NCBI RefSeq assembly: GCF_006345805.1
Contig: NC_042997.1
Location: 92,442,001-92,506,000 of the forward strand
Origin: Octopus sinensis
Lineage: Eukaryota
DNA: 64,000 bases
Direction: 5' to 3'
The position numbers and the translations under genes are program-made. The notes beneath the pieces were generated by a model that was not told the DNA's origin, ran no database searches, and was given only the letters and a program-made list of their open reading frames with translations. Positions 403-60,851 of this stretch are shown here, one piece after another. Numbering within the stretch: the stretch's first letter is position 1; the number at the start of each line of letters is the position of its first letter.

Positions 403-434
403 CATTATTTGAAAGTGAGGGAGAGAAAAATATT

Positions 435-1193
435 TTTTCTACTCTAGGAACAAGGCCCGAAATTTTTGGGGAGGGAGTGCCCGTTGATTAGATCGACTCC
501 AGTACGCAACTGGTGCTTAATTTATCGACCCCGAAAGGATGAAAGGCAAATTCGACCTCGGCGGAATTTGAACTTGGACGTAAAGACAGACGAAGTACCG
601 CTAAGCATTTCGCCCGGCGTGCTAAAGTTTCTTATTTCTTTACTGCCCACAAGGGACAATACACAGAGGGGACAGACAAACGGATTAAGTCGATTATATC
701 GATCCCAGTGCGTAGCTGGTACTTATTTAATCGACCCCGAAAAGATGAAAGGCTAAGTCGACCTCGACGGAATTTGAACTCAGAACGTGGCGGCAGACGA
801 AATACCTAGTTCTTTACTACCCACAAGGGGCTAAACACAGAGAGGACAAACAAGGAGAGACAAACGGATTAAGTCGATTATATCGACCCCAGTGCGTAAC
901 TGGTACTTATTTAATCGACCCCGAAAGGATGAAAGGCAAAGTCGACCTCGACGGAATTTGAACTCAGAACGTGGCGGCAGACGAAATACCTATTTCTTTA
1001 CTACCCACAAGGGGCTAAACACAGAGAGGACAAACAAGGAGAGACAAACGGATTAAGTTGATTATATCGACTCCAGTGCGTAACTGGTACTTATTTAATC
1101 GACCCCGAAAGGATGAAAGGCAAAGTCGACCTCGACGGAATTTGAACTCAGAACGTAGCGACAGACGAAATACGTTTCTGCCTGCTCGCCGCC
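435..1193 (-). mobile_element. SINE (tail B) interrupted in its head by a three-unit array of SINE body plus Tx1-like tail
   Basis: Head 1193-1174, rest of host 632-435; gtttct duplicated at 627-632 and 1174-1179 around the insert. Confidence 0.8.
633..1173 (-). repeat. Head-to-tail tandem array, three units of about 184 bp (SINE body from GTATTTCGTCTG to tail ...GTGGGTAGTAAAGAAATA)
   Basis: aatac anchors at 801, 985 and 1169 give a 184-bp period; the unit nearest 633 is slightly shorter. Confidence 0.9.
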
Positions 1194-1891
1194 TTGGGAG
1201 GGGAAAAATTAAGCAAATAATCAGTTAAGCAAATAATCTTGTTGCTATAATTTCGTTGTTTTATGTTTCACACGACTCAAGAACAAAAGTTACTTGATAA
1301 TATTAGTATATTAAAGGTAATGAACAAAGCTGAGACAATATTATCGTTCAACTGTCGTACAAAGTTGATTTTTCTCTCCATCCTTACAATATCAATAGAC
1401 AAGTACCAGTGATAATCCTTGTTCTGTTGCCAAAATACTTAATATCTACGCTCATTCTCTACGGCACCGCTATCTTGCAAGAGGAAATCTGGCGCTCTGT
1501 AATTTTGTTGATTACACTTTTCATTATGAAACAGTGAAAAGCAACTATTAGATTATGTTGGAATTCAATATATTTTGCCAAAGTGTCACCATCATATAAT
1601 TATTACTACTAACAGGACCCGTAAATATTTCACGGAATTAATGGTAAATTTATTGGATTAGAAGGCGGCGAGCTGGTAGAAACGTTAGCACGCCGGGCGA
1701 AATGCGTAGCCGTATTTCGTCTGCCGCACATGTGTTCGTGAAGTAAGAATTGCTGTTTCGTGGTGTTAATACTGTTAACAACTGTTGTTTCTTGTTAAAC
1801 TGTTGAATAACTTAACTGTTGGAGTTTTCAATTGAAAACACTTAGTGCTTGTGGTAGCACGCGTTGTTCATTCCCCCTTTGGGGGGGAAGA

Positions 1892-3421
1892 ATGTCGTCT
1901 AGCATGGAGCCTACCGTTGGAGCAGAAATACTTGTTTCTCCTGTTGAGAGGAGGAAATACATGTCCGGCGAGGAGCCAACTACAGACAAGGAAATAGGGG
2001 TTTCCCCCGCTACAAGAAGGAATAGCAGAGAGGATAATATATTTGATATTTTTGGAGATGTGTCTGAGAGCTCGTCAGAACTTTCACCAGAAGAGTTTCC
2101 GACTTTGCCAGAGAACAAAGGCATTGTGTCGAAGAGAATAATTGATGTGCCTAGCATCCAGATAGAACCAAAAAATGGAAAAAAAAGTTTTGCGTTGGCT
2201 GCTGGGGGTGGAACCCAGATACTGTCGATGAATAAAAGCGAAATTATGAAATACAGCAAAATGATGGAAATAAATGACAACAGTGTGAAAATTGAACCTC
2301 CGCAAAAGTTATTACAGGAAGAAAAGCAAAAAACAATAATTTTCAAAACATATTGTCTACAAAATAGAAAAATTGAAAGAATGTCAGAAGAGAAAATAGA
2401 AAAGTGCTTAAAGCCAATATTGGGCGACGTAGTATTTCTGAGAAGAGGAAAAAAATTCGGAACGGTGGAAGTAAGGTTCACCAATAAAGAAATAGCACAC
2501 AAGAACTCAGTGGAAACGTTGAAAACGAACGACGTGGAGTTAATACCCTATTATATGGGGATGAGGACGTCGCGAATAAAAATTACAAGGGTCCCGCCAG
2601 AGGTCGAACCTATGTGGTTGTTGGCGGCAGTCCTAATCAAAGAGGTAGAAAAAATTACTCTCCTCCAGGCTACCGCTACGGAAAACCCACGCTGGGATGG
2701 TAAAACAATTAATCTTCTCATTCAAGCGGACCCTAAAATAATTCAAACAATTCCTGAGACAATTGAGGTAGGGGAGGAGAACCTCGTGGTGTTTGTTGAG
2801 GGCCGAAAACCTCGATGTTTTTTATGTGGTCAATTAGGCCACATTCGAAGGAACTGCAAGGAAAATGAAGAAGAGGAGGAAGAGGAGAAAAAAGACAAAG
2901 AGGAAGAAGATAAAGAAGAAACAGATGAGAAAAAAACAACAAACAAAAGAAAAATACAACCAGCAACCCAGCCGAGAGCGGCGACTACTACAGAACAACG
3001 ACCAAAAAAGACTGCCAGAAGAGAAAAAGAAGAAAAAGGCATAATAGCCGTATACACTAAAGATACTGAGCTCATGAGAGACATTCAACTCATAAAGACT
3101 GTAAAAAAAATTGATAACCTTTCAGAGGAATTTATCAATTACGACATATATAAAGTCTCAAATAAGACTTATAGAATTCTACAAAATAAGTACAGAAAGA
3201 CTGTATCTTCATTGAGATTAGATTTTAACAAGTCGATATTTCATGGATTACCAGCTCCGATCCCGCGAGAAAAGGAAAAGGTGGAGATTCCCCCTCCACC
3301 TGATAATTCTGTGTCGGTGGTGAGACGGGATTTTGACAAATCTATTTCCCAAGACCGTCCACCTCCGACCCTGGATAAAAAAAAGGTGGAGGGTCCCCCT
3401 CCACCGGACAATCCTAATTAA
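1892..3421 (+). CDS. LINE ORF1, gag-like nucleic-acid-binding protein with CCHC zinc knuckle
   Basis: First in-frame ATG at 1892 (ORF track starts at TTG 1832); CFLCGQLGHIRRNC knuckle, acidic/basic stretch, Pro-rich C terminus. Confidence 0.88.
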   Translation: MSSSMEPTVGAEILVSPVERRKYMSGEEPTTDKEIGVSPATRRNSREDNIFDIFGDVSESSSELSPEEFPTLPENKGIVSKRIIDVPSIQIEPKNGKKSFALAAGGGTQILSMNKSEIMKYSKMMEINDNSVKIEPPQKLLQEEKQKTIIFKTYCLQNRKIERMSEEKIEKCLKPILGDVVFLRRGKKFGTVEVRFTNKEIAHKNSVETLKTNDVELIPYYMGMRTSRIKITRVPPEVEPMWLLAAVLIKEVEKITLLQATATENPRWDGKTINLLIQADPKIIQTIPETIEVGEENLVVFVEGRKPRCFLCGQLGHIRRNCKENEEEEEEEKKDKEEEDKEETDEKKTTNKRKIQPATQPRAATTTEQRPKKTARREKEEKGIIAVYTKDTELMRDIQLIKTVKKIDNLSEEFINYDIYKVSNKTYRILQNKYRKTVSSLRLDFNKSIFHGLPAPIPREKEKVEIPPPPDNSVSVVRRDFDKSISQDRPPPTLDKKKVEGPPPPDNPN

Positions 3422-3432
3422 ACAGGTAAGTG

Positions 3433-6400
3433 ATGGCTATTCACATTGGTTGTTTAAATGTTCATGGCCTGTTGTCAAGCTGGAAGCAAGGACGCTTTCT
3501 GAATGACATCAGGTCGAGAAATTTGGATGTAATTGTTGCAACGGAAACCCGGGTGAAGGGGCCAAGAGATCTGCTCCCCCTCCTGAACGGCTACGAGAAA
3601 TACGTTTCTCCGAGTCGGGCGGGAGGTGGGGGTGGGGTGTTGGTCCTACTAAAAAGAAACCGGGTAGCCGAGAAAAAGTTGGTTTTTTCTGACCCAGAAG
3701 GCAGTCTGGTCGTTCTCGACTTGACATTCAGTTGTGGCAAGACAATCAGGCTGGTCGCTATTTATGCACCAAACATTATTGGCCCGCAAACTGAATATTT
3801 TCGTGGCCTAGGAAAGTTCCTAGCCACGTCGCATTCACTAGTAGTGTTAGGAGACTCTAATACAATATGTGCAGCACACACAGATTGTGTTGGCTCAAAC
3901 TCGAACATGAACAGAAAATGTAACACAGGCTTTCGGGATCTGCTAAGTCAATTTCAGCTAGCAGATCCATATAGGTTGGAGCACCCGAACACTCCACAGT
4001 GGACGTGGTCAAATAGTGACGGGTCTACCAGAACATATCTAGATAGGATTTTAATTAGAGAAAAAGATAAGTCCATAGTTGAGTATCCACAGTTTTTTCT
4101 AGTCAGCTACAGTGACCACAAGATGGTTACCTGTAAACTGACGGTAGATAAGTTGCATAGACAGGGATCTGGCTACTGGAAACTCAATACGTCCCTTTTG
4201 GCGATTGAGGAGTACAGAAAGCGGATCAAGATGTTAATACAGAGGGTATTAACAGGTACCATCATTAATAACAAATGGTGGTACGCCCTAAAAAGAGCCA
4301 TCAAATATGAGTCTATTAGGTTTAGCATAAGTTTAGCTAAGAAGGGACGTAAAATAGGAGATGGTCTAGTTAAGGAACTAGAAGAAGCCTGGAGGACTGG
4401 TAATACAGACCAAGCGAGGGTGAAAAGACTGGAGTTAAACCAGCATCTTGAAGCCCACCACATGGGAAGTATTACCAGAGCTAAGTTACGGGCAATGGGA
4501 AGTGAAGGAATCAAAGCCGCTGGATGGGCCCGAGTGGTGGAAGCTCGGCAAGGAAATAGTTCCTCTATTCGGTCTTTGACGAATCAAAATGGTGTCTTGA
4601 TAAACGAACCCGAGAAAATGTGTGAGGTCTTTCGGGAGTACTTCGCCCAGCTGTTCGGGGGTGACGGCGGTCCTGGTGGTGGGAGAGCCCTCGAGGACTT
4701 TCTTACCGGGCTGCCGTGCCTCTCGGGGTCGGATGCGGAGTCTTGCGAAGGGCCAATCACACTTGAGGAGGTGATGGAGGCTTTGGCCGATTGTAAAGCG
4801 GGTAAGTCACCGGGACTTGATGGTCTTCCGTACGAGCTGTATAAATGTATGCCAGACTTGTTCGGGCAACTACTGACTGACGTGTACGCGAACTGGAAAC
4901 AGAATGGGTTTATCCCCAGATCTGTGCGCCGGGGAGTAGTGACGTTGGTCAGAAAGGACCCGGACAAGGGGGACGTTCTAGAGAATTTCAGGCCCATCAC
5001 TCTGTTAAACGCAGAAGTGAAGATTTTGGCCAAGGTTCTAGCAAAAAGGTTGGCGCGTGTCGCGAATGGTATAGTCGGGGAGGCACAGACATGTGCCATC
5101 CCAGGCAGAACCATTCAGGATACCCTCCATCTTATTCGCTATACCATAGAGAGGTTTGGTAATAAATCTGGCAAAGGTGGGGCATTGGTGCATTTGGACC
5201 AGTCTAAAGCTTTTGATAGGGTTGACCATCGATACCTAGCGACTGTACTTGCGCGGTTTGGCCTGGGCTTTGGCTTCCTCAGGTGGTTTATCGCTTTGTA
5301 CCACAACATTGACTCGATAGTTCGGGTGAACGGTTTCCTTTCGAAGCCGTTCTGCATCAGACGCTCGGTTCGTCAAGGATGTCCGCTTTCACCACTTTTG
5401 TATGTGATGGCTCTCGAGCCATTACTGCAAAGGTTGAGTGGCATCCCGAGAGAACCAGGACTAGAGGAGTTTGTTACGGCTTTCGCGGATGATATCACTA
5501 TCAGTGTAACCACAGTGGTACGCCTACGTGAAGTAGGTAAGACTATTGAGGCTTACGAGGAGGTAGCAGGAGCAAAGATTAACCGGGAAAAGTCGGTCGG
5601 CTTGCAGCTCGGCACCTGGGTTGGCAAGTCGATGCCTTCAGACAGTGTTGTTAGGCGCTGGATGGAGGGACCGGTTAAGTTGCTGGGAGTCTGGTTTGGA
5701 CCAGGCCTCCAGATAGAGAAGAACTGGACGGAGGTATTAAGCAGGGTGGCTGCAGTAGTCAAGACTTGGTCTTGGCGGTGGCTATCCCTGAAAGGGAGGG
5801 CGGAAGTGGCCAATGTGTTTATCGCATCGGTCATTACCTACCGCCTGACTGTCGTGCCCTGTCCGGATTCGTGGTTGATCAGGTTGGAGAGACAGCTCTT
5901 TCGCTTTTTGTGGAAGGGCAGGTCGCCACTTGTGAAACGCTCTGTCTGCTGTCAAAAGCCTTTAAATGGAGGTTTAGGGATGCCTTGGTTAATGATGCGC
6001 AGACATGCGTTGAGGTTGAGGCACCTCTGGATTCTCCTGGATAGTGAACGGGTGTGGTCTCCACTGGCCAGACAAATGTTCCCTGAGTTCAAGAGTTTTT
6101 GCGAACAGGAAGCCTGGTGTTCTCGTAGACCGAGGTCGAGTGAGTGGCATAAAGAGTGCCGTAAGGCCCTCTTGCTGTTCCGGCGCTCGGGCAACGCCAG
6201 CGGTGGGGGTTCCACACGGATTTTATATAGTGGGTTGGTAGAGTCTGAATGCGACGATGGCCTGGGGTCGACTCTAGGTCTCGGATTTATTCAACTGGAC
6301 AGCTTGTTTCATCGTACATTCGGGTTGAGAACGTTGGACAACTTCCAAAAGTCCTTAACCCGGCAATGCTACAGAGGTGCCTTGCCCGTTTGGGATAAGC

Positions 6401-6834
6401 TCGCAAGACATGGTAAACGTCAGTCGCCGACCTGTCCAAGATGCGGTGGGGACAGGGAAACCGTCCCTCACGCTATTGTTCAGTGTCCGGAGATAACTGA
6501 AATGTGGGCTTATGCTGAACATCTGTTGTCCGGCGAAGGAAGAGTACGGCTGTCGACTGAGTCAATTATAAAAATTGACCCACCGGGAGTTCTAACGAAC
6601 GAAGGTAAGAATTGTTTTCTCACGGTTGTAGCAATAGCAAAAGAGGCTGTATGGAATACTAGGATAAAAGGAATTAAGACAGGCAACTTTATCTCTGGTG
6701 ACAATTTACGATCCTTTTTTTCTTTTCATTTGAAAAGGAAACTGTGGCTGGAGAAGAGGTGTCTGTCAGAGTGTACGTTCCAAAAGAGATGGAAGTATGT
6801 TGCACGAGTGTTGTGCCTGCAAGGAACCGTGTGA
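3433..6834 (+). CDS. LINE ORF2: APE endonuclease, reverse transcriptase, C-terminal zinc finger
   Basis: LNVHG, GDSN, YLDRIL, YSDH (endonuclease); KSPGLDG, RPITLLN, KAFDRV, QGCPLSP, FADD (RT); CPRC..ETVPHAIVQC. Confidence 0.95.
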   Translation: MAIHIGCLNVHGLLSSWKQGRFLNDIRSRNLDVIVATETRVKGPRDLLPLLNGYEKYVSPSRAGGGGGVLVLLKRNRVAEKKLVFSDPEGSLVVLDLTFSCGKTIRLVAIYAPNIIGPQTEYFRGLGKFLATSHSLVVLGDSNTICAAHTDCVGSNSNMNRKCNTGFRDLLSQFQLADPYRLEHPNTPQWTWSNSDGSTRTYLDRILIREKDKSIVEYPQFFLVSYSDHKMVTCKLTVDKLHRQGSGYWKLNTSLLAIEEYRKRIKMLIQRVLTGTIINNKWWYALKRAIKYESIRFSISLAKKGRKIGDGLVKELEEAWRTGNTDQARVKRLELNQHLEAHHMGSITRAKLRAMGSEGIKAAGWARVVEARQGNSSSIRSLTNQNGVLINEPEKMCEVFREYFAQLFGGDGGPGGGRALEDFLTGLPCLSGSDAESCEGPITLEEVMEALADCKAGKSPGLDGLPYELYKCMPDLFGQLLTDVYANWKQNGFIPRSVRRGVVTLVRKDPDKGDVLENFRPITLLNAEVKILAKVLAKRLARVANGIVGEAQTCAIPGRTIQDTLHLIRYTIERFGNKSGKGGALVHLDQSKAFDRVDHRYLATVLARFGLGFGFLRWFIALYHNIDSIVRVNGFLSKPFCIRRSVRQGCPLSPLLYVMALEPLLQRLSGIPREPGLEEFVTAFADDITISVTTVVRLREVGKTIEAYEEVAGAKINREKSVGLQLGTWVGKSMPSDSVVRRWMEGPVKLLGVWFGPGLQIEKNWTEVLSRVAAVVKTWSWRWLSLKGRAEVANVFIASVITYRLTVVPCPDSWLIRLERQLFRFLWKGRSPLVKRSVCCQKPLNGGLGMPWLMMRRHALRLRHLWILLDSERVWSPLARQMFPEFKSFCEQEAWCSRRPRSSEWHKECRKALLLFRRSGNASGGGSTRILYSGLVESECDDGLGSTLGLGFIQLDSLFHRTFGLRTLDNFQKSLTRQCYRGALPVWDKLARHGKRQSPTCPRCGGDRETVPHAIVQCPEITEMWAYAEHLLSGEGRVRLSTESIIKIDPPGVLTNEGKNCFLTVVAIAKEAVWNTRIKGIKTGNFISGDNLRSFFSFHLKRKLWLEKRCLSECTFQKRWKYVARVLCLQGTV

Positions 6835-8361
6835 ATAGACGAGGAAAAAAAAAAAAAAGGAAAAATAAAAAGGTATCAGCGGTAGATCGGGGCTTGTGGG
6901 ATCGGAGCGTAACTTGATCATCGCTTCATTTGTATTGCTTTTGTACTGTGTATTCCATTCGATTTTTATGTATTGTATTTTATTTTTGATGTCACATTTA
7001 TGTAAAATCATATCGATTCACTGATCCCATCAGTTGTACTGTCCATATCTATGTTTGGCCCCCGGTGGGCAATAAAGAAATTCGTATTTCGTCTGCCGTT
7101 ACGTTCTGAGTTCAAATTCCGCCGAGGTCGACTTTGCCTTTCATCCTTTCGGGGTCGATAAATTAAGTACCTGTTACGCACTGGGTTCGATGTAATCGAC
7201 TTAATCCGTTTGTCTGTGCTTGTTTGTCCCCTCTGAGTTTAGCCCATTGTGGGTAGAAAAGAAATAGGTAAATTTATTGGATTATTTCTGAAAACTTTAT
7301 CCAAAAAGCCTGAAAGCCTAGCCTGTGCTGCGTCAGTATCGAAAGATAGTCGCTCACCAGCTAATCTTTGAAAAGTGAAGGAAATTGGAATACGATGATT
7401 ACTTAATGCACTTTATATATACACTTTATGCATAATTTTATAGACAATACACAAAACTCTCCCTCTTCGTCTTACTCTCTTTTTCTCTCTCCGTTTTCTT
7501 TCGCTCTTCACATTTCCCTCCAACTAATCACGTGAAAACGTTACAGCGGGCTAAGTAACAGAGGAAAAACAAACTTAATTAAAAAAGAAAATCACACATT
7601 TCATTCATCACCACCTCTTCTCTCTCTCCTCTTCAACTAATCACGTGGAAACGTTACGGACGGGCTAAGAAACGGAGTGACAAGCAGAATTATTATAAGG
7701 TAGTGATAACTCGTCTCCTACAGCATTTCTACAGTTATGAATTCCAACTCTCAAACTCTCAATGATTCAACAGCAAAATTTTTGTTTAGTCCAAGGTAAA
7801 TCCTGATGAGCAAGTTATCATAACTTTTCATATAGAACTGTATCACCCACTAAGCTTCCGTTTTTGAAGGCAGTAGAGTGTGATTTGAGGGAGATATGGC
7901 TGTTAGTTTTAGCAAGTCTAGCAACCACATAGAAGCACCTTCGTTAGTTTTGCTTGAAGTGACAATTTGTGCTTGCAACAATTATTCAGTTACAGCTATC
8001 ATTCAGAGGTAAACTCATCCAATCACTCTACTAACCAAGCGTACAAACCATTGTTTTTATCATCTCACAGTTTCTCTTGTATTAAACGGAATAGATGTAA
8101 CCGTATTTCTTCTGCCACGCGTTGCGATCGAATGATGGTAGTATCAGAAAGTGAAAAATCGGTGGACGCATAGTTTGCTTTTCCTTCCCCGCTTTTTTTT
8201 TTTTTTTATCGATCGGAATATTGGCAACGATGTTATTTTATTACAGTATCTATATAACCTTGTGTCGTTTTTGGACAATGCCGGAATTGCATTTGGTCAC
8301 CCGATTTGAAGTAACAAAACCATGGAAATATGCTTTCTGCTTTTCTTTTGTTTTAGTCATA

Positions 8362-8782: not shown

Positions 8783-9000
8783 AGGCGGTGAGCTGGCAGA
8801 ATAGCTAGCACGCCGGACAAAATGTTAGGCGGCATTTCGTCCGTCATTACGCTCTGAGTTCAAATTCCACCGAGGTCGACTTTGCCTTTTATCCTTTCGG
8901 GAACCGATAAAATAAGTACCAGTGGAACACTGGGGGGCGACATAATCAACTTACCCACCTAGCCCCTCTTGCTGGCCTTGTGCCAAAATTTGAAACCAAT
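8783..9000 (+). mobile_element. tRNA-derived SINE, tail B
   Basis: aggcggtgagctggcagaa head, B box GAGTTCAAATTCC, tail ggccttgtgccaaaatttgaaacc. Confidence 0.85.
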
Positions 9001-18173: not shown

Positions 18174-18385
18174 TTTCAGATTTTAACACAAGGCCAGCAA
18201 TTTCGGGGGAGGGAGTAAATCGATTACATCGACCATTGTGCTCAAGTGGCACTTATTTTATCGACTTTAAAAGAATGAAAGGCAATGTGGATCTCGGGGG
18301 AATTTTGAACTCAGAACCTAAAGACGGACGAAATGCCGCTAAACAATTTTCTTGGCGTGCGAACGATTCTGCCAGATCGCCTCCT
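18174..18385 (-). mobile_element. tRNA-derived SINE, tail B
   Basis: Reverse complement of the family head, B box and tail. Confidence 0.8.
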
Positions 18386-19000: not shown

Positions 19001-19206
19001 CTTTTCTACTATAGGTACAAGGCCTGAAATTTGGGGAGAGGCGGTCAGTCGATTAGCTCAACCCTAGTAAGCAACTGGTACTTAATTCATCGACCCCGAA
19101 AGGATGAAAGGCACAGTCAACCTCGGCAGAATTTGAACTTAGAACGTAACGACGGGCGAAATACCGCTAAACATTTCGTCCAGCGTGCTAACGACTCTGC
19201 CAGCTC

Positions 19207-19797: not shown

Positions 19798-22700
19798 AAT
19801 AATAATAATAATAATAATAATAACAACAACAACAATAACAACAATAATAGTGGTTTCAAATTTTGGCACAAGGCCAGAAATTCGGGGGAAGGGTAAGTCG
19901 ATTACATCGACCTCTGGCTTCAACTGGTACTTACTTTATTGACTCCGAAAGGATAAAAGACAAAGTCGATCTCAGTGGCATGTACAATGATCATAGTAAA
20001 CATTGGATAGAAATTTAACATATGACACGCAAGATATGAAATTAAAAGCAGAAAACACAAATTGTGTAAGTCACACTCACACACCAGAGTAACCAAGCTA
20101 AGTGGGACCAGAACATCTCACCTCAAACTCCGGTCCCCTCCAATCCCTGAAACTGGTACACTCGAAGGTGTCCGTGAGCATCTTTGGGCAAGAAATATTC
20201 AACGCTCACTAGATAAGTGCATTTTAGCCGATCATAAACTCATATAGCTTTTAACAGACTACGATTTGAATGTTTGACACAATCGAGTTTTTTTCACTCT
20301 CAATAAATAGCTTATAACTACTTTTCTCTTCTTTCATATCGTTTGGTAGCTTTATCAGTTCTTCGTTTCTTGTACGAAGAACTGAACTTTTTCCCAGTCT
20401 TGTGCACATGATAACCTCTTACATTTTCGTTCGCCTTTTCTAAGGGTATGTTGACATTTTAGTGGTGGTGCGCCTGTTTTCGTTTCTTGCATTTCGCATT
20501 GTTTTCAGAAGCCTTCCACACATCGTTTTTATATCTTCCTCGTCGTCGCAAAACTATGGAATGGGTCTGCTGTTTTAAACAATGGGAGGGAGTCTTTCAA
20601 CTTAGTGCTGAATTTTTGAAACCAGCTACGAAGCAAGCAATCACTTCTGACATTTTGGAGTCTGTGACTAGTGATACCCAATAGTACACTTTTGATATTT
20701 CATAGACCGGATGCCATATGATGAGTAAACCGTATCGTCAAAAGTGAATGTGAATGATACAGAAATTCTTGTCTTGTTGACGGTTACTACATATATGTCT
20801 ATGATCTGAGGTTGTTGAGCAAGTGACCTTGCCTCTAAGGCGATCCTGGTGCATGTACATTTGTTTTCCACTCTATGTTGAAAAGTGAAAGTCACTCAAA
20901 TTAGTACTGGTTACGTTTGTTTGTATTTGTCAAACTTGGGTAGTTTTGGATAGAAGTTTATCATAACCTTCACCTTCCGTAAAAATGTTTTTGATGTTGA
21001 TAACCCTCTTCATCAAAACACGGTTTTTTTCCCGAACAATATTGAAATTGATGATAGAAAGGAGGGGCTTGTGCGTTTGGTTCTGTTTAGTTGTTGCTAT
21101 AATATAATAATATAATATAATGATATCTATAATATAATATAATAATATCTGTCAGCTTCCATCTAGCTTGCGAATTTGTTTTCTGTAAGTTTCAGTTTTA
21201 AGAACAACGTACTCAACTTACATTAATAAATCGCTCTTGTTGCTGTCTTTGCTTATGTTTTTTGTTGCTTTGGTTATTGCTGCTCTTGCTGTTGCTGGAA
21301 ATAAGTAACTGGTAGGTTCTTGGATCTCTTACCTCTCTTTTAGAGGACTTTTCCTTCTTGGTGCTTACAACTTTTCATCCTTTGGAGTCTGTATCGTTGC
21401 TTGACGAGAAGTTGGAGGTTAACATGTGTTCATACATGTTTATATTTATATTGCCCTGATTGAGTAGAGATATATGATCATAGTAATTCCATCCGTGACC
21501 ACTTTGTATTTTAAGGAGTATCTGGATTAGATTATTCAGCTATATAGAGATACCCCCATTAGTGCATGTGATTGCTGCCGATGTTCCAATCATTAGTTAC
21601 GATCTTACTGTTGCTGCTACTTATGCGGTTGAGTTGGTACCTTTCCTGCCTTTTTGGTGTCAGAAGACTCAGAAGATTAGTGTTGCCGTAGTTATAGTAC
21701 AAGAGCATTCTATTTTATTCGACATTGTACAATGTAGTTGGGTGCATCTGTTGATAGATGCTTTCTATTGTTTGTGAAGTCTGAAATTTCAATGCAGTTT
21801 CTTAAGACGACCTGAAATTGATCACGTCTACATATTCACCCGCTTATCCAGCGTTGGCAGCACCTTATTGAAAGTAATTTTGGATCCTACGTAAAAAGGT
21901 ACGAAGTCAAATTACTTTCCGACATATTGATCAGCAGAGTGTTTCTGGACTTCGTATTTGTAAAACAATGCCTCTATAATAAATTCGTACAGTATCTCTA
22001 TTGTGACACCCCCCCCAAAGCAATATTCGCCCCGTTTAAGTATTTTTTCAGCGTTCCCGGTCTTCTTATCTATTTTAGATTTTCGGCCAACTCACATATA
22101 TTTTGAAATTTTGTTTTATTTCATTCCCTGGCGGAAAGATATCGTTATTTTTGTGCACTCGTTTCATATTTTCTTCCTTGGACACCAGAGAAATATGGAC
22201 GCAAGATCTACTTGTTCTGAGAAATAAGCCTCCCGCTTATGATCATTTTTGTTATTTTTTTTGTTTCTTAATCCCGAGCTGACTCTAGCTGAGCTTGACA
22301 AAAGGCATTCCAGCTATAACTATCAAATGTGTCCTCTTATATTTGTAAAATGGTATTCTGTGATTTAAGGTTATTCTGCAATTGTTGGCGGCGGGGTTCT
22401 TTGTGCTAGTGGTTATAGTAAATCAACTGTCGCTGCTAACAACTGTGATAGAGGAGGTGTTGATTGTGCTAATTCTGCTGTTGTTGTTGAGTAGTCTGAG
22501 CTCGGTTATGATCAAAGTGTTCCAGCCATAGCCATCTTATTTTATTTTCAAACTACATTATCCAATCTCTTCTTTTTTTTAAAGATATTAAGATGTTAGT
22601 TTGAGGAGAATTTTGTCTTTATTTCTAGCTTTGACTCGGTGATGTTTAAACCCGGGTCAGTTCTGATCGAGTTGTCCTAGGATGAAAGGGGTACCAGCAA

Positions 22701-25204: not shown

Positions 25205-26495
25205 CGAGGGACGTTCAATAAGTAATGCCCCTGACCCACTTGCAGTTGTTTGATCTAGCTGAAATTTTGCATGTTCAATTATTTATATCTCTATAGATTA
25301 AGTGGCAAATTACAGCTCTGAACTAATTGTGGTTTCTGATTTACAGATGTTTGAACTGAGTCAAGTGTGAAATGGAGCCTGTTGAGTGTCGAGCAGTGAT
25401 CCGGTTTTTGTATTTGAAAGGACGCACACCACGGGAGACTTTTGATGAAATGAAAGTAACTTATGGTGATGATGCCCCATCATATGACCTTGTAAAACGC
25501 TGGCATCGTGAATTCAAACATGATCGGAACTCTGTGGAAACAGCTCCCAGATCTGGTCGCTCCCCTTCTGCCATTGATGAGGCATCTGTCCGTCAAGTTG
25601 AGGCTGCCATTTTGGAAGATCGACGCATAACTATTCGCCAAATAGCCCATGATGTCAAGATTAGTACCGGGTCTGTGGAAACTATCATTCATGACCATTT
25701 GCATATGCAAGGTGTCTGCCAGATGGATTCCCAGGTTGCTCACACCTTTCCAGAAGCAAGAACGCGTCGAGTGCTCGAGGATGAATTTGGAGATGTGCCA
25801 AGAAGATGAGTCAAAATTTTTCAAAAGACTGATTACACAGGATGAAACCTGGGTCTATCACTGTGATCCAGAGACCAAAGCCCAGTCAATGCAGTGGAAG
25901 CACCGTGACTCACCTCCTCCAAAGAAGGCAAGGGTGCAGCCCTCCGCTGGCATGGTCATGCTCACAGTCTTCTGGGACCAGGACGGAGTAGTGATGACAG
26001 ATTTTCTGGCAAAGGGTACCACAATTACAGGAGCCTATTATGCTTCACTTTTGAGGAAATTAAGAGAAGCTATCAAAATCAAGAGGCGGGGCAAGATCAG
26101 CAAAGGAATCCTCCTCCTGCAGGACAACGCTCCGGTCCACAACTCGCATGTCGCCAGATCAGAAGTACAGGCGTGCGGCTATGAACTCCTCCCACATCCC
26201 CCCTACTCTCCTGACCTTTCACCCTCTGATTTTCACCTCTTCCCAGCCATGAAGTTGTTTTTGAAAGGAAAGCGTTTCCCAGATGATGCAGCCTTGATTT
26301 CTGAAGTCACGTCATGGTTGGAGGACCAAGCTGGGGTCTTCTACAAAAACGGTCTCCAGAGCTGCATCAAACGATGGGAGAAATGCGTAACTCTGGGTGG
26401 TTCCTATGTGAAAAAAGACTAATAACTGTGCCAAGTTTCGTTGCTCTACTGCTATGGGAAGTGGGTCAGGGGCATTACTTATTGAACGCCCCTCG
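25205..26495 (+). mobile_element. mariner transposon (DD34D, irritans-like TIRs), full length 1291 bp
   Basis: 37-bp TIRs with one mismatch (cgagggacgttcaataagtaatgcccctgacccactt), TA TSD at 25203-25204 and 26496-26497. Confidence 0.95.
25372..26422 (+). pseudogene. mariner transposase with a single frameshift near 25708
   Basis: HTH N terminus, KVSARWIPRLLT, ITQDETW, LLQDNAP..H, YSPDLSPSDF with 34 residues between the second and third Asp; ORFs 25372-25809 and 25649-26422 overlap at the break. Confidence 0.9.

Positions 26496-29951: not shown

Positions 29952-60851
<30,900 letters not shown>

Follow-up and report, generated by a model that had tools for sequence, protein, structure and literature searches.

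Known LINE/SINE pairs and the octopus locus

Target-specific insertion is characteristic of the Tx1 clade of long interspersed nuclear elements (LINEs), whose reported targets include small nuclear RNA (snRNA), 5S and tRNA-spacer genes, microsatellites, satellites, DNA transposons and long terminal repeat (LTR) elements (PMC4494074, PMC3706591). In crocodilians, Kojima (2015) described SINEU, a short interspersed nuclear element (SINE) group, and the Tx1-Mar LINEs, which prefer one and the same site in the transposon Mariner-N4_AMi, with an inferred 16-bp target-site duplication; the strength of that preference varied from 13% to 90% of the copies, tandem SINEU-3 copies sandwiching the duplication were read as sequential insertions, and the 3′ half of SINEU-1 was similar to no non-LTR family in Repbase (PMC4494074). 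Here, we describe a 64,000-nt stretch of the Octopus sinensis genome (assembly GCF_006345805.1, contig NC_042997.1, positions 92,442,001 to 92,506,000, forward strand; hereafter, the window), in which one full-length LINE of the L1 superfamily and one subfamily of a SINE family, which carries the 3′ tail to be called tail A, end preferentially at the same position of that very SINE family.

This locus resembles the crocodilian case in that a LINE and a SINE share a site in a repeated element, in the 16-bp duplication and in the tandem SINE copies. In crocodilians, a Mariner DNA transposon serves as the target, whereas the target in the window is a SINE, and one of the dependent SINE's own family. 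The head of SINEU is snRNA-derived, whereas zero Rfam snRNA matches were found across the whole window; the octopus SINE is thus not a SINEU. Moreover, the octopus pair shares about 45 nt of tail, and its insertions nest with a seamless 5′ side. That a SINE can take over the target preference of its site-specific LINE of Tx1 type is already known as a principle; what is new is that the target is a SINE, that this SINE is of the dependent SINE's own family, and that the tail of some 45 nt is visibly shared. The initial annotation of the window knew of no earlier account of the arrangement. Our literature searches returned no account of a LINE that targets a SINE, nor one of these sequences, but the SINEU/Tx1-Mar pair constitutes a precedent (PMC4494074).

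Tx1L in Tx1D (Xenopus laevis), Keno, Kibi, Koshi, Mutsu and Dewa are likewise LINEs with an apurinic/apyrimidinic (APE)-type endonuclease that occupy one sequence in a multicopy target, which may itself be a transposon; no SINE is among the targets of Tx1-clade families in PMC4494074 and PMC3706591, and the octopus LINE is a candidate member of that clade. In the eel pair UnaL2/UnaSINE1 (Kajikawa and Okada 2002, cited in PMC4494074), as in the window, the tail of the SINE is a copy of the 3′ end of the LINE, forms a short hairpin and is poly(A)-independent. The octopus pair differs in being site-preferring, and recognition of its hairpin is deduced from covariation only.

We consider it probable (roughly 0.6) that a site-preferring endonuclease of the LINE nicks the body of the SINE and that RNA of the tail-A SINE is mobilised in trans to the same site. 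For the more far-reaching proposal, that a SINE subfamily inserts preferentially into the body of its own family by means of a 3′ module borrowed from a site-specific LINE and so forms concatemers of site, body and tail, we see about even chances.

A LINE inserted at one position of a SINE

The LINE and the SINE that it interrupts comprise the following features (SINE positions count from the 5′ end of the SINE).

1643..1660 and 7267..7284 (+): target-site duplication of the host SINE, 18 bp, GGTAAATTTATTGGATTA, perfect, in non-SINE DNA
1664..1726 (+): host tail-A SINE, 5′ part, positions 1-63 by SINE mapping
1711..1726 (+): target-site duplication of the LINE, copy 1, CGTATTTCGTCTGCCG, SINE positions 48-63
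1727..7082 (+): full-length LINE, L1/Tx1 type (Tx1 as candidate), 5356 bp, two uninterrupted open reading frames (ORFs), no poly(A)
1892..3421 (+): ORF1, 509 amino acids, CCHC zinc knuckle at residues 309-322
3433..6834 (+): ORF2, 1133 amino acids, APE-type endonuclease, reverse transcriptase (RT), zf-RVT/CCHC
7037..7082 (+): 3′ tail of the LINE, common with SINE tail A; hairpin GCCC-CCGGT-GGGC at 7058-7070, AATAAA at 7071-7076, end ...AAAGAAATT
7083..7098 (+): target-site duplication of the LINE, copy 2, 16/16 identical to copy 1
7099..7266 (+): host tail-A SINE, 3′ part, positions 64-231, end ...GTAGAAAAGAAATA

A SINE of about 231 nt is thus interrupted by the LINE at one exact position, with a perfect 16-bp duplication. 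The initial annotation proposed that the LINE cuts inside the SINE; the element was indeed inserted there with a clean duplication, from which a specificity of its endonuclease may be deduced. The host is a stand-alone tail-A copy, located in non-SINE DNA, with GGTAAATTT following the end of its tail. Its own 18-bp duplication starts with GGTA despite this location, which points to a nick preference at the level of the DNA, free of any possible effect of SINE homology.

In ORF2, the Pfam domains Exo_endo_phos (residues 22-229), RVT_1 (513-753) and zf-RVT (975-1025) were recognised, with the catalytic motifs N/E/D-N/D-H, FADD (at 684) and CPRCG...HAIVQC in place. Its best relatives of solved structure are those of human L1 ORF2p (E=8e-64, residues 5-867); R2 proteins match more weakly (1e-15 to 2e-20), over the RT region alone. 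By these matches, the LINE is a member of the L1 superfamily, for which Tx1 clade is a candidate label only. Since both ORFs are open, domains and motifs are in place and the duplication is perfect, it is apparently an intact, recently inserted element. Recent activity of L1-Tx1 families has been reported in Octopus vulgaris (PMC13282606). The proline-rich C-terminal part of ORF1 includes a diverged direct duplication of about 98 nt (3213-3310 versus 3321-3415, 72% identity).

Tail-A SINE ends share the register of the LINE

At its 3′ side (7082/7083), the LINE joins the target as AAAGAAATT followed by CGTATTTCG. The initial annotation placed SINE ends in the same register, and this is what we found: at 991/990, AAAGAAATA is followed by GGTATTTCG; at 807/806, AAAGAACTA by GGTATTTCG; and at 50119/50120, AAAGAAATA by GGTATTTCA, the last junction leading into a SINE with another 3′ tail (tail B). 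A sixth tail end, at 633/632, continues with AGAAACTTTAGC, that is, at SINE position 14 (AGAAAC) of a tail-B SINE and not at position 48. Altogether, [C/G]GTATTTC stands, at the same SINE position, directly after four of the six tail ends in the window (one of the LINE and five of SINEs), and every insertion into a SINE is sense-in-sense. A LINE and a SINE thus end at the same position of a repeated target.

Could these junctions coincide by chance, or through a generic preference for nicking AT-rich DNA? Fragments of the SINE are frequent (24 BLAST matches in 64 kb), which speaks for chance. The heptamer GTATTTC, however, occurs 28 times on both strands of the window (2.2e-4 per position), and finding it after three of five independent tail ends has a probability of P ~1e-10; in addition, the orientation is always the same. 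Coincidence is effectively refuted within the window, and we regard it as having next to no chance of being the explanation. LINE and tail-A ends share SINE position and orientation well above chance. Since one of the five SINE-A ends lies in non-SINE DNA and another one at a different SINE position, the choice of site is a preference and not an absolute rule.

The site lies in the head common to all subfamilies of the SINE. The initial annotation spoke of a self-targeting SINE; tail-A SINEs do join their own family, but with the target in the common head, they are family-targeting rather than strictly self-targeting.

A 3′ tail common to the LINE and to SINE tail A

By BLAST with the reconstructed SINE, we identified 24 copies or fragments in the window. 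They have a common head and body and at least three different 3′ tails: tail A (...TGTTTAGCCCCTTGTGGGTAGTAAAGAAATA), tail B (...TTTCGGGCCTTGTGCCTAGAGTAGAAAAGAAT, often running into (ATT)n) and tail C (...TGGCCTTGTGCCAAAATTTGAAACCAATATT). Tail A occurs in only five copies, that is, three array units at 633-1174 (-), the host of the LINE and the copy at 49902-50119. The elements have the traits of SINEs: they are short, non-coding and multicopy, with duplications of 15-18 bp at 1664/7266, 41208-41371, 49902-50285 and 425-1193. Neither ARAGORN nor Rfam detected a tRNA in the SINE head (for one copy, even at E<=10); a B-box-like GAGTTCAAATTCC is seen at SINE positions ~72-84. Tails B and C end in or beside (ATT)n, and some copies have (ATT)n on both sides (e.g., 19047-19206). 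The duplications of tail-B copies start with AT.

The last 30 nt of the LINE (7052-7081, TGTTTGGCCCCCGGTGGGCAATAAAGAAAT) match the reverse complement of 992-1021 at 25/30 positions, as the initial annotation stated, and the other four tail-A copies at 22-24/30. Amongst the 128,000 30-mers of both strands of the window, the best that is not tail A scores 19 (a self-palindromic overlap) and the following one 18. With one gap allowed, the similarity of LINE and tail A extends over ~45 nt (7037-7081), with ~82% identity, and stops right at the 3′ terminus of either element (BLAST within the window, E=0.002). Sequence specific to tail A and the LINE, TCTNTGTTTRGCCCC...GGGYARTAAAGAAAT, surrounds a hairpin. 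By sequence comparison, tail A is most like the tail of this LINE. Read from the sequence, neither the LINE nor the tail-A SINE has a poly(A) tail, and AATAAA at 7071-7076 precedes the 3′ end of the LINE by 7 nt.

The short hairpin that had been noticed in both tails is borne out: it consists of a 4-bp stem and a 5-nt loop, GCCC-CCGGU-GGGC in the LINE (7058-7070) and GCCC-CUUGU-GGGU in SINE tail A, and it appears in the minimum free energy folds of the LINE tail and of two of the four folded SINE-A tails. The energies of single-sequence hairpins were no better than those of shuffles (z from +0.55 to -2.5), and covariation was used as evidence instead. The hairpin is also present in tails B and C and in relatives of the LINE at 38% identity, where the loop is CUUGU (CCGGU in the LINE of the window). 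Tail A and the LINE have the stem GCCC/GGGY, tail B and the relatives RGGC/GCCU, and tail C has UGGC/GCCA. The hairpins of SINE tails B and C, with a CUUGU loop and covarying stems, are located as follows.

8970-8990, 18180-18200, 19860-19880, 19010-19030, 41170-41190, 50255-50285, 58560-58575 and others: hairpins of SINE tails B and C

In a fixed-length alignment of 17 tails, with 500 shuffles and slid registers as controls, 92.6% of the cells were paired and all four pairs showed changes on both sides; the observed pairing score was matched by none of the 500 shuffles, and slid registers came nowhere close. Judged by this covariation, the hairpin is a conserved RNA feature of the whole LINE/SINE group and likely an RT recognition element, as it is in stringent-type LINE/SINE pairs. 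Such pairs are not known to insert with sequence specificity. As tails B and C carry the hairpin too, several related LINEs, of the clade of the window LINE, probably serve one SINE family.

The tail in relatives of the LINE

The nearest database relatives of ORF2 (P0001-P0005) are unnamed metagenomic proteins of 38-40% identity, all from one ENA assembly (ERZ21867824). The homologue search returned none above 40% identity, and an exact-protein look-up of ORF2 gave no record. The P0001 cluster counts 732 member sequences, suggesting that the family is highly repeated in that organism. Pattern scans with the tail (GCCCCYKGTGGGYARTAAAGAAAT) and with the SINE core yielded zero matches in metagenome, viral and prokaryote-genome collections, and protein-guided locus searches yielded no relatives.

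At their 3′ ends, the relatives have a CUUGU-loop hairpin, then a second hairpin with compensatory differences between copies (CCUGUGAAUCUACAGG versus CCAUUUUUGUAAAAUGG), and then AAAUAAA(G/A/U). This bears on another explanation of the shared tail, in which the LINE “tail” is a remnant of SINE tail A because the LINE was inserted, with a deletion, into the first unit of a SINE dimer. In a dimer composed of positions 1-231 and 48-231, any insertion behind position 63 of unit one would look like a duplication of 48-63, and ~82% identity to tail A is not far from the 90-95% amongst SINE-A copies. Relatives at 38% protein identity in another organism, however, end in the same tail architecture, which argues that the tail module is native to the LINE clade. 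AATAAA, as an RNA polymerase II (Pol II) feature, fits a LINE; upstream, no other 3′ end can be seen, and 16 bp is also the duplication length of a relative. We consider a SINE remnant very unlikely.

The 3′ end of the relatives (CCCCCAAAA..AGGCCTTGTGCCTA; L001:8143-8190, L002:8147-8186, L004:7158-7196) is nearly equal to the octopus-type SINE tail B. Given the close resemblance to tail B of CCCCCAAAA... upstream of the relatives' hairpin, another LINE of the window LINE's clade was probably the source of tail B.

The full-length relative L004 is located in a satellite-like repeat of ~460 bp with a 16-bp duplication, AATCCTTCATTTGTTG (573-588 and 7196-7211), and L001 occupies the same site; the two are 97% identical over 8 kb, flanks included, and may therefore be duplicates rather than independent insertions. 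In L002, L003 and L005, full-length relatives stand head to tail. The period in L002/L003 (ctg88761c) is 6821 bp; the L002 copies are separated by ~20-30 nt, the 3′ part of which (CATTGTTG) resembles the satellite target site, while the tail in L005 directly abuts the next 5′ untranslated region. A 16-bp stagger and tandem stacking thus both occur in the LINE clade.

Nested and tandem SINE copies

Tail-A SINEs joined to other SINEs occur at two loci: an array of three units and a composite of two SINEs.

425..632 (-): tail-B SINE, position 14 through tail B; with its head at 1175-1193, the element that hosts the three units
633..806 (-): array unit 3, positions 48-231; variant tail (10-nt deletion, GGGCAG), joined to position 14 (AGAAAC) of the host tail-B SINE
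807..990 (-): array unit 2, positions 48-231; its GGTATTTCG follows the tail of unit 1; identity between these two units 97.3%
991..1174 (-): array unit 1, positions 48/49-231, complete tail A; adjoined on the left by the AGAAAC duplication of the host tail-B SINE
1175..1193 (-): head (positions 1-19) of the host tail-B SINE, which continues at 425-632
49902..50119 (+): full-length tail-A SINE, its tail followed by position 48/49 of a tail-B SINE
50120..50285 (+): tail-B SINE, from position 48/49 to tail B; 3′ part of the composite

The three units sit between positions 19 and 14 of the host tail-B SINE, which has a 6-bp AGAAAC duplication there and is itself flanked by an imperfect duplication of ~15 bp, AAT(A)TTTTCYCYTCCC. 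We also considered that positions 1-19 with unit 1 were an internally deleted SINE-A beside an unrelated, truncated SINE-B; this was rejected, as no duplication supports it and head and remainder lie within one duplication of ~15 bp. The array-hosting SINE (425-632, -) and a tail-C SINE (197-408, +) are arranged tail to tail, in inverted orientation, about 15 nt apart. The composite (49902-50285) has a single flanking duplication, ATGAAAGNGNTGAAA (49887-49901 and 50286-50300), and no duplicated head. A “dimer SINE” family amplifying as a unit was likewise rejected: the architectures of the two loci differ.

Head-to-tail SINE multimers are known from bivalves, some of them of the form TSD-(SINE-TSD)n, where TSD stands for target-site duplication (Martelossi et al. 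2024, PMC11481361), and the squamate SINE-derived satellites are similar. The bivalve TSD1-(SINE)n-TSD1 arrays have truncated heads and tails, which fits internal duplication (PMC11481361), whereas the units in the window keep their 3′ terminus and start at the nick: all of them have the 3′ terminus of the stand-alone copy and begin at the nick position of the LINE, and they are not cut at arbitrary internal points of head and tail. The junctions therefore look retrotranspositional, unlike those of an arbitrary internal tandem duplication. The initial annotation held that copying of tail-A RNA builds concatemers; the ends of the units agree with that, but the start of the founding unit and the headless composite are left unexplained by it.

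One tail-A insertion could have been followed by growth of the array at the DNA level, through unequal crossing-over or replication slippage. SINE arrays in bivalves and reptiles have been ascribed to unequal recombination (PMC11481361), and units 1 and 2, at 97.3% identity, could be a local duplication. Moreover, all three units have the private substitution CCGTCGAGG. Unit 3, however, differs by a 10-nt indel and ~6-7% substitutions (92.5-94.2% identity with units 1 and 2), as much as unlinked copies do from each other (90-95%), which favours separate insertions; the independent junctions in the same register at 50119/50120 and 7082/7083 would not be explained, and crossing-over would account for the growth of the array only and not for the shared target. 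Array formation by unequal crossing-over alone, which the initial annotation named as grounds for abandoning its proposal, was not borne out, every unit keeping its complete 3′ terminus. We rate DNA-level amplification as improbable next to an origin of the units by insertion at the preferred site.

A more serious rival for the formation of array and composite is template switching, in which the RT, in the course of one target-primed reverse transcription, copies SINE RNA back to positions 63-48 and jumps to tail-A RNA, so that junctions of tail A with position 48, composites and arrays arise in one event. The jump could rely on homology with read-through RNA in which the 16-nt site follows the tail; or else an RNA end or a stop of the RT would lie at position 48/49. 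Chimeric retrocopies formed by template switching, U6-L1 being an example, were reportedly described by Buzdin et al. in 2002. Like them, the composite has a full-length 5′ partner and a 5′-truncated 3′ partner within one duplication; the switch points of those chimeras are scattered, whereas the junction in the window lies at one fixed position, which is a bona fide integration site of the LINE. The three-unit insert starts exactly at 48/49 with its own 6-bp duplication, as if it were one piece, and there is no TTTT run in the tail-A unit, making read-through by RNA polymerase III (Pol III) across units plausible. Template switching cannot, however, yield a perfect 16-bp duplication around the LINE at the same position, nor does it explain the GGTA start of the duplication of the stand-alone copy in non-SINE DNA. 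None of the ~15 tail-B or tail-C copies in the window is truncated at 48/49 (truncated ones start at 66-82), and an initial junction of tail and site at the DNA level would still be required. Site preference is the best explanation for where LINE and SINE land; template switching, which we hold to be unlikely yet worth serious weight, competes with it for the way in which the array and the composite were formed.

Elsewhere in the window, at 25372-26422, a Mariner/Mos1-type transposase (HTH_48, Transposase_1, DDE_3) is split over two overlapping frames, and is thus probably a frameshifted copy.

Proposed mechanism

The anatomy of the elements, their duplications, the tail similarity, the covarying hairpin and the non-random coincidence of the junctions are directly observed, and from them we infer the specificity of the endonuclease, mobilisation in trans and a 5′ resolution assisted by homology. 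The APE-type endonuclease of the LINE would have a strong site preference and nick the bottom strand just 5′ of [C/G]GTA(T/A)(T/A)T, for which positions 48-63 of the local SINE family would offer the best and most abundant site; the top-strand nick would follow 16 nt downstream. Reverse transcription would be primed at the nick on RNA with the 3′ module of ~45 nt, consisting of the hairpin, then AAUAAAGAAAU, and no poly(A). Having acquired this module, the tail-A SINE subfamily (~231 nt) would be mobilised in trans and land preferentially at the same position of other SINEs, its own subfamily included, always sense-in-sense. With the site in the head common to all subfamilies, tail-B SINEs (50120) as well as other tail-A SINEs (the array) would be landing places for tail-A SINEs. 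The sequence expected 3′ of tail-A and LINE ends would be [C/G]GTATTTCGTCTG, in the sense orientation.

As the incoming cDNA would be homologous to the target, its 5′ side could be resolved through homology and without a duplicated head, so that units of positions 48-231 would become stacked head to tail. Nascent copies may also be cleaved again at their own internal site, giving units that start at the nick position. More speculatively, transcripts of site-embedded copies could anneal to the nicked target: with AATAAA 7 nt before the LINE end, their 3′ ends should fall within the 16-nt site or directly behind it, and such annealing would explain the precise, poly(A)-less junction.

A number of observations sit uneasily with this mechanism. 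The founding unit of the array starts at 48/49 beside the 6-bp AGAAAC duplication, with no junction of tail and site there, and the last unit lacks the 16-nt site after its tail; simple repeated site-specific insertion predicts neither. The composite at 49902-50285 has one flanking duplication only, and its two 16-nt sites differ at 5/16 positions, and thus are not a fresh duplication. The start of the founding unit and the headless composite would require a 5′ side resolved with the help of homology, a template switch or a second cleavage of the nascent copy. CCGTCGAGG, which all three array units have in common, is missing from the two other tail-A copies; local duplication or gene conversion could lie behind it. 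Several GTATTTCG sites of the window carry no insertion, and the basis of the reading is one LINE copy with five tail-A ends in one 64-kb window.

Implications

If the arrangement holds genome-wide, a SINE would be added to the known targets of site-specific APE-type LINEs, as a “safe haven” offered by the most abundant repeat of the genome. The octopus SINE would, moreover, be the first dependent SINE found by us to carry its own target site. The SINE family would then serve as a landing pad for both LINE and SINE, with a built-in route from interspersed to tandem repeat; nested and tandem SINE structures would be generated mechanically and possibly seed satellites. Repeat annotation and age landscapes would be distorted, because seamless nested copies would be counted as many 5′-truncated SINEs. 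With a 16-nt stagger, a covarying hairpin and an apparently intact LINE at hand, the octopus pair would be a compact natural system in which to study how APE endonucleases choose their DNA and stringent-type RTs their RNA.

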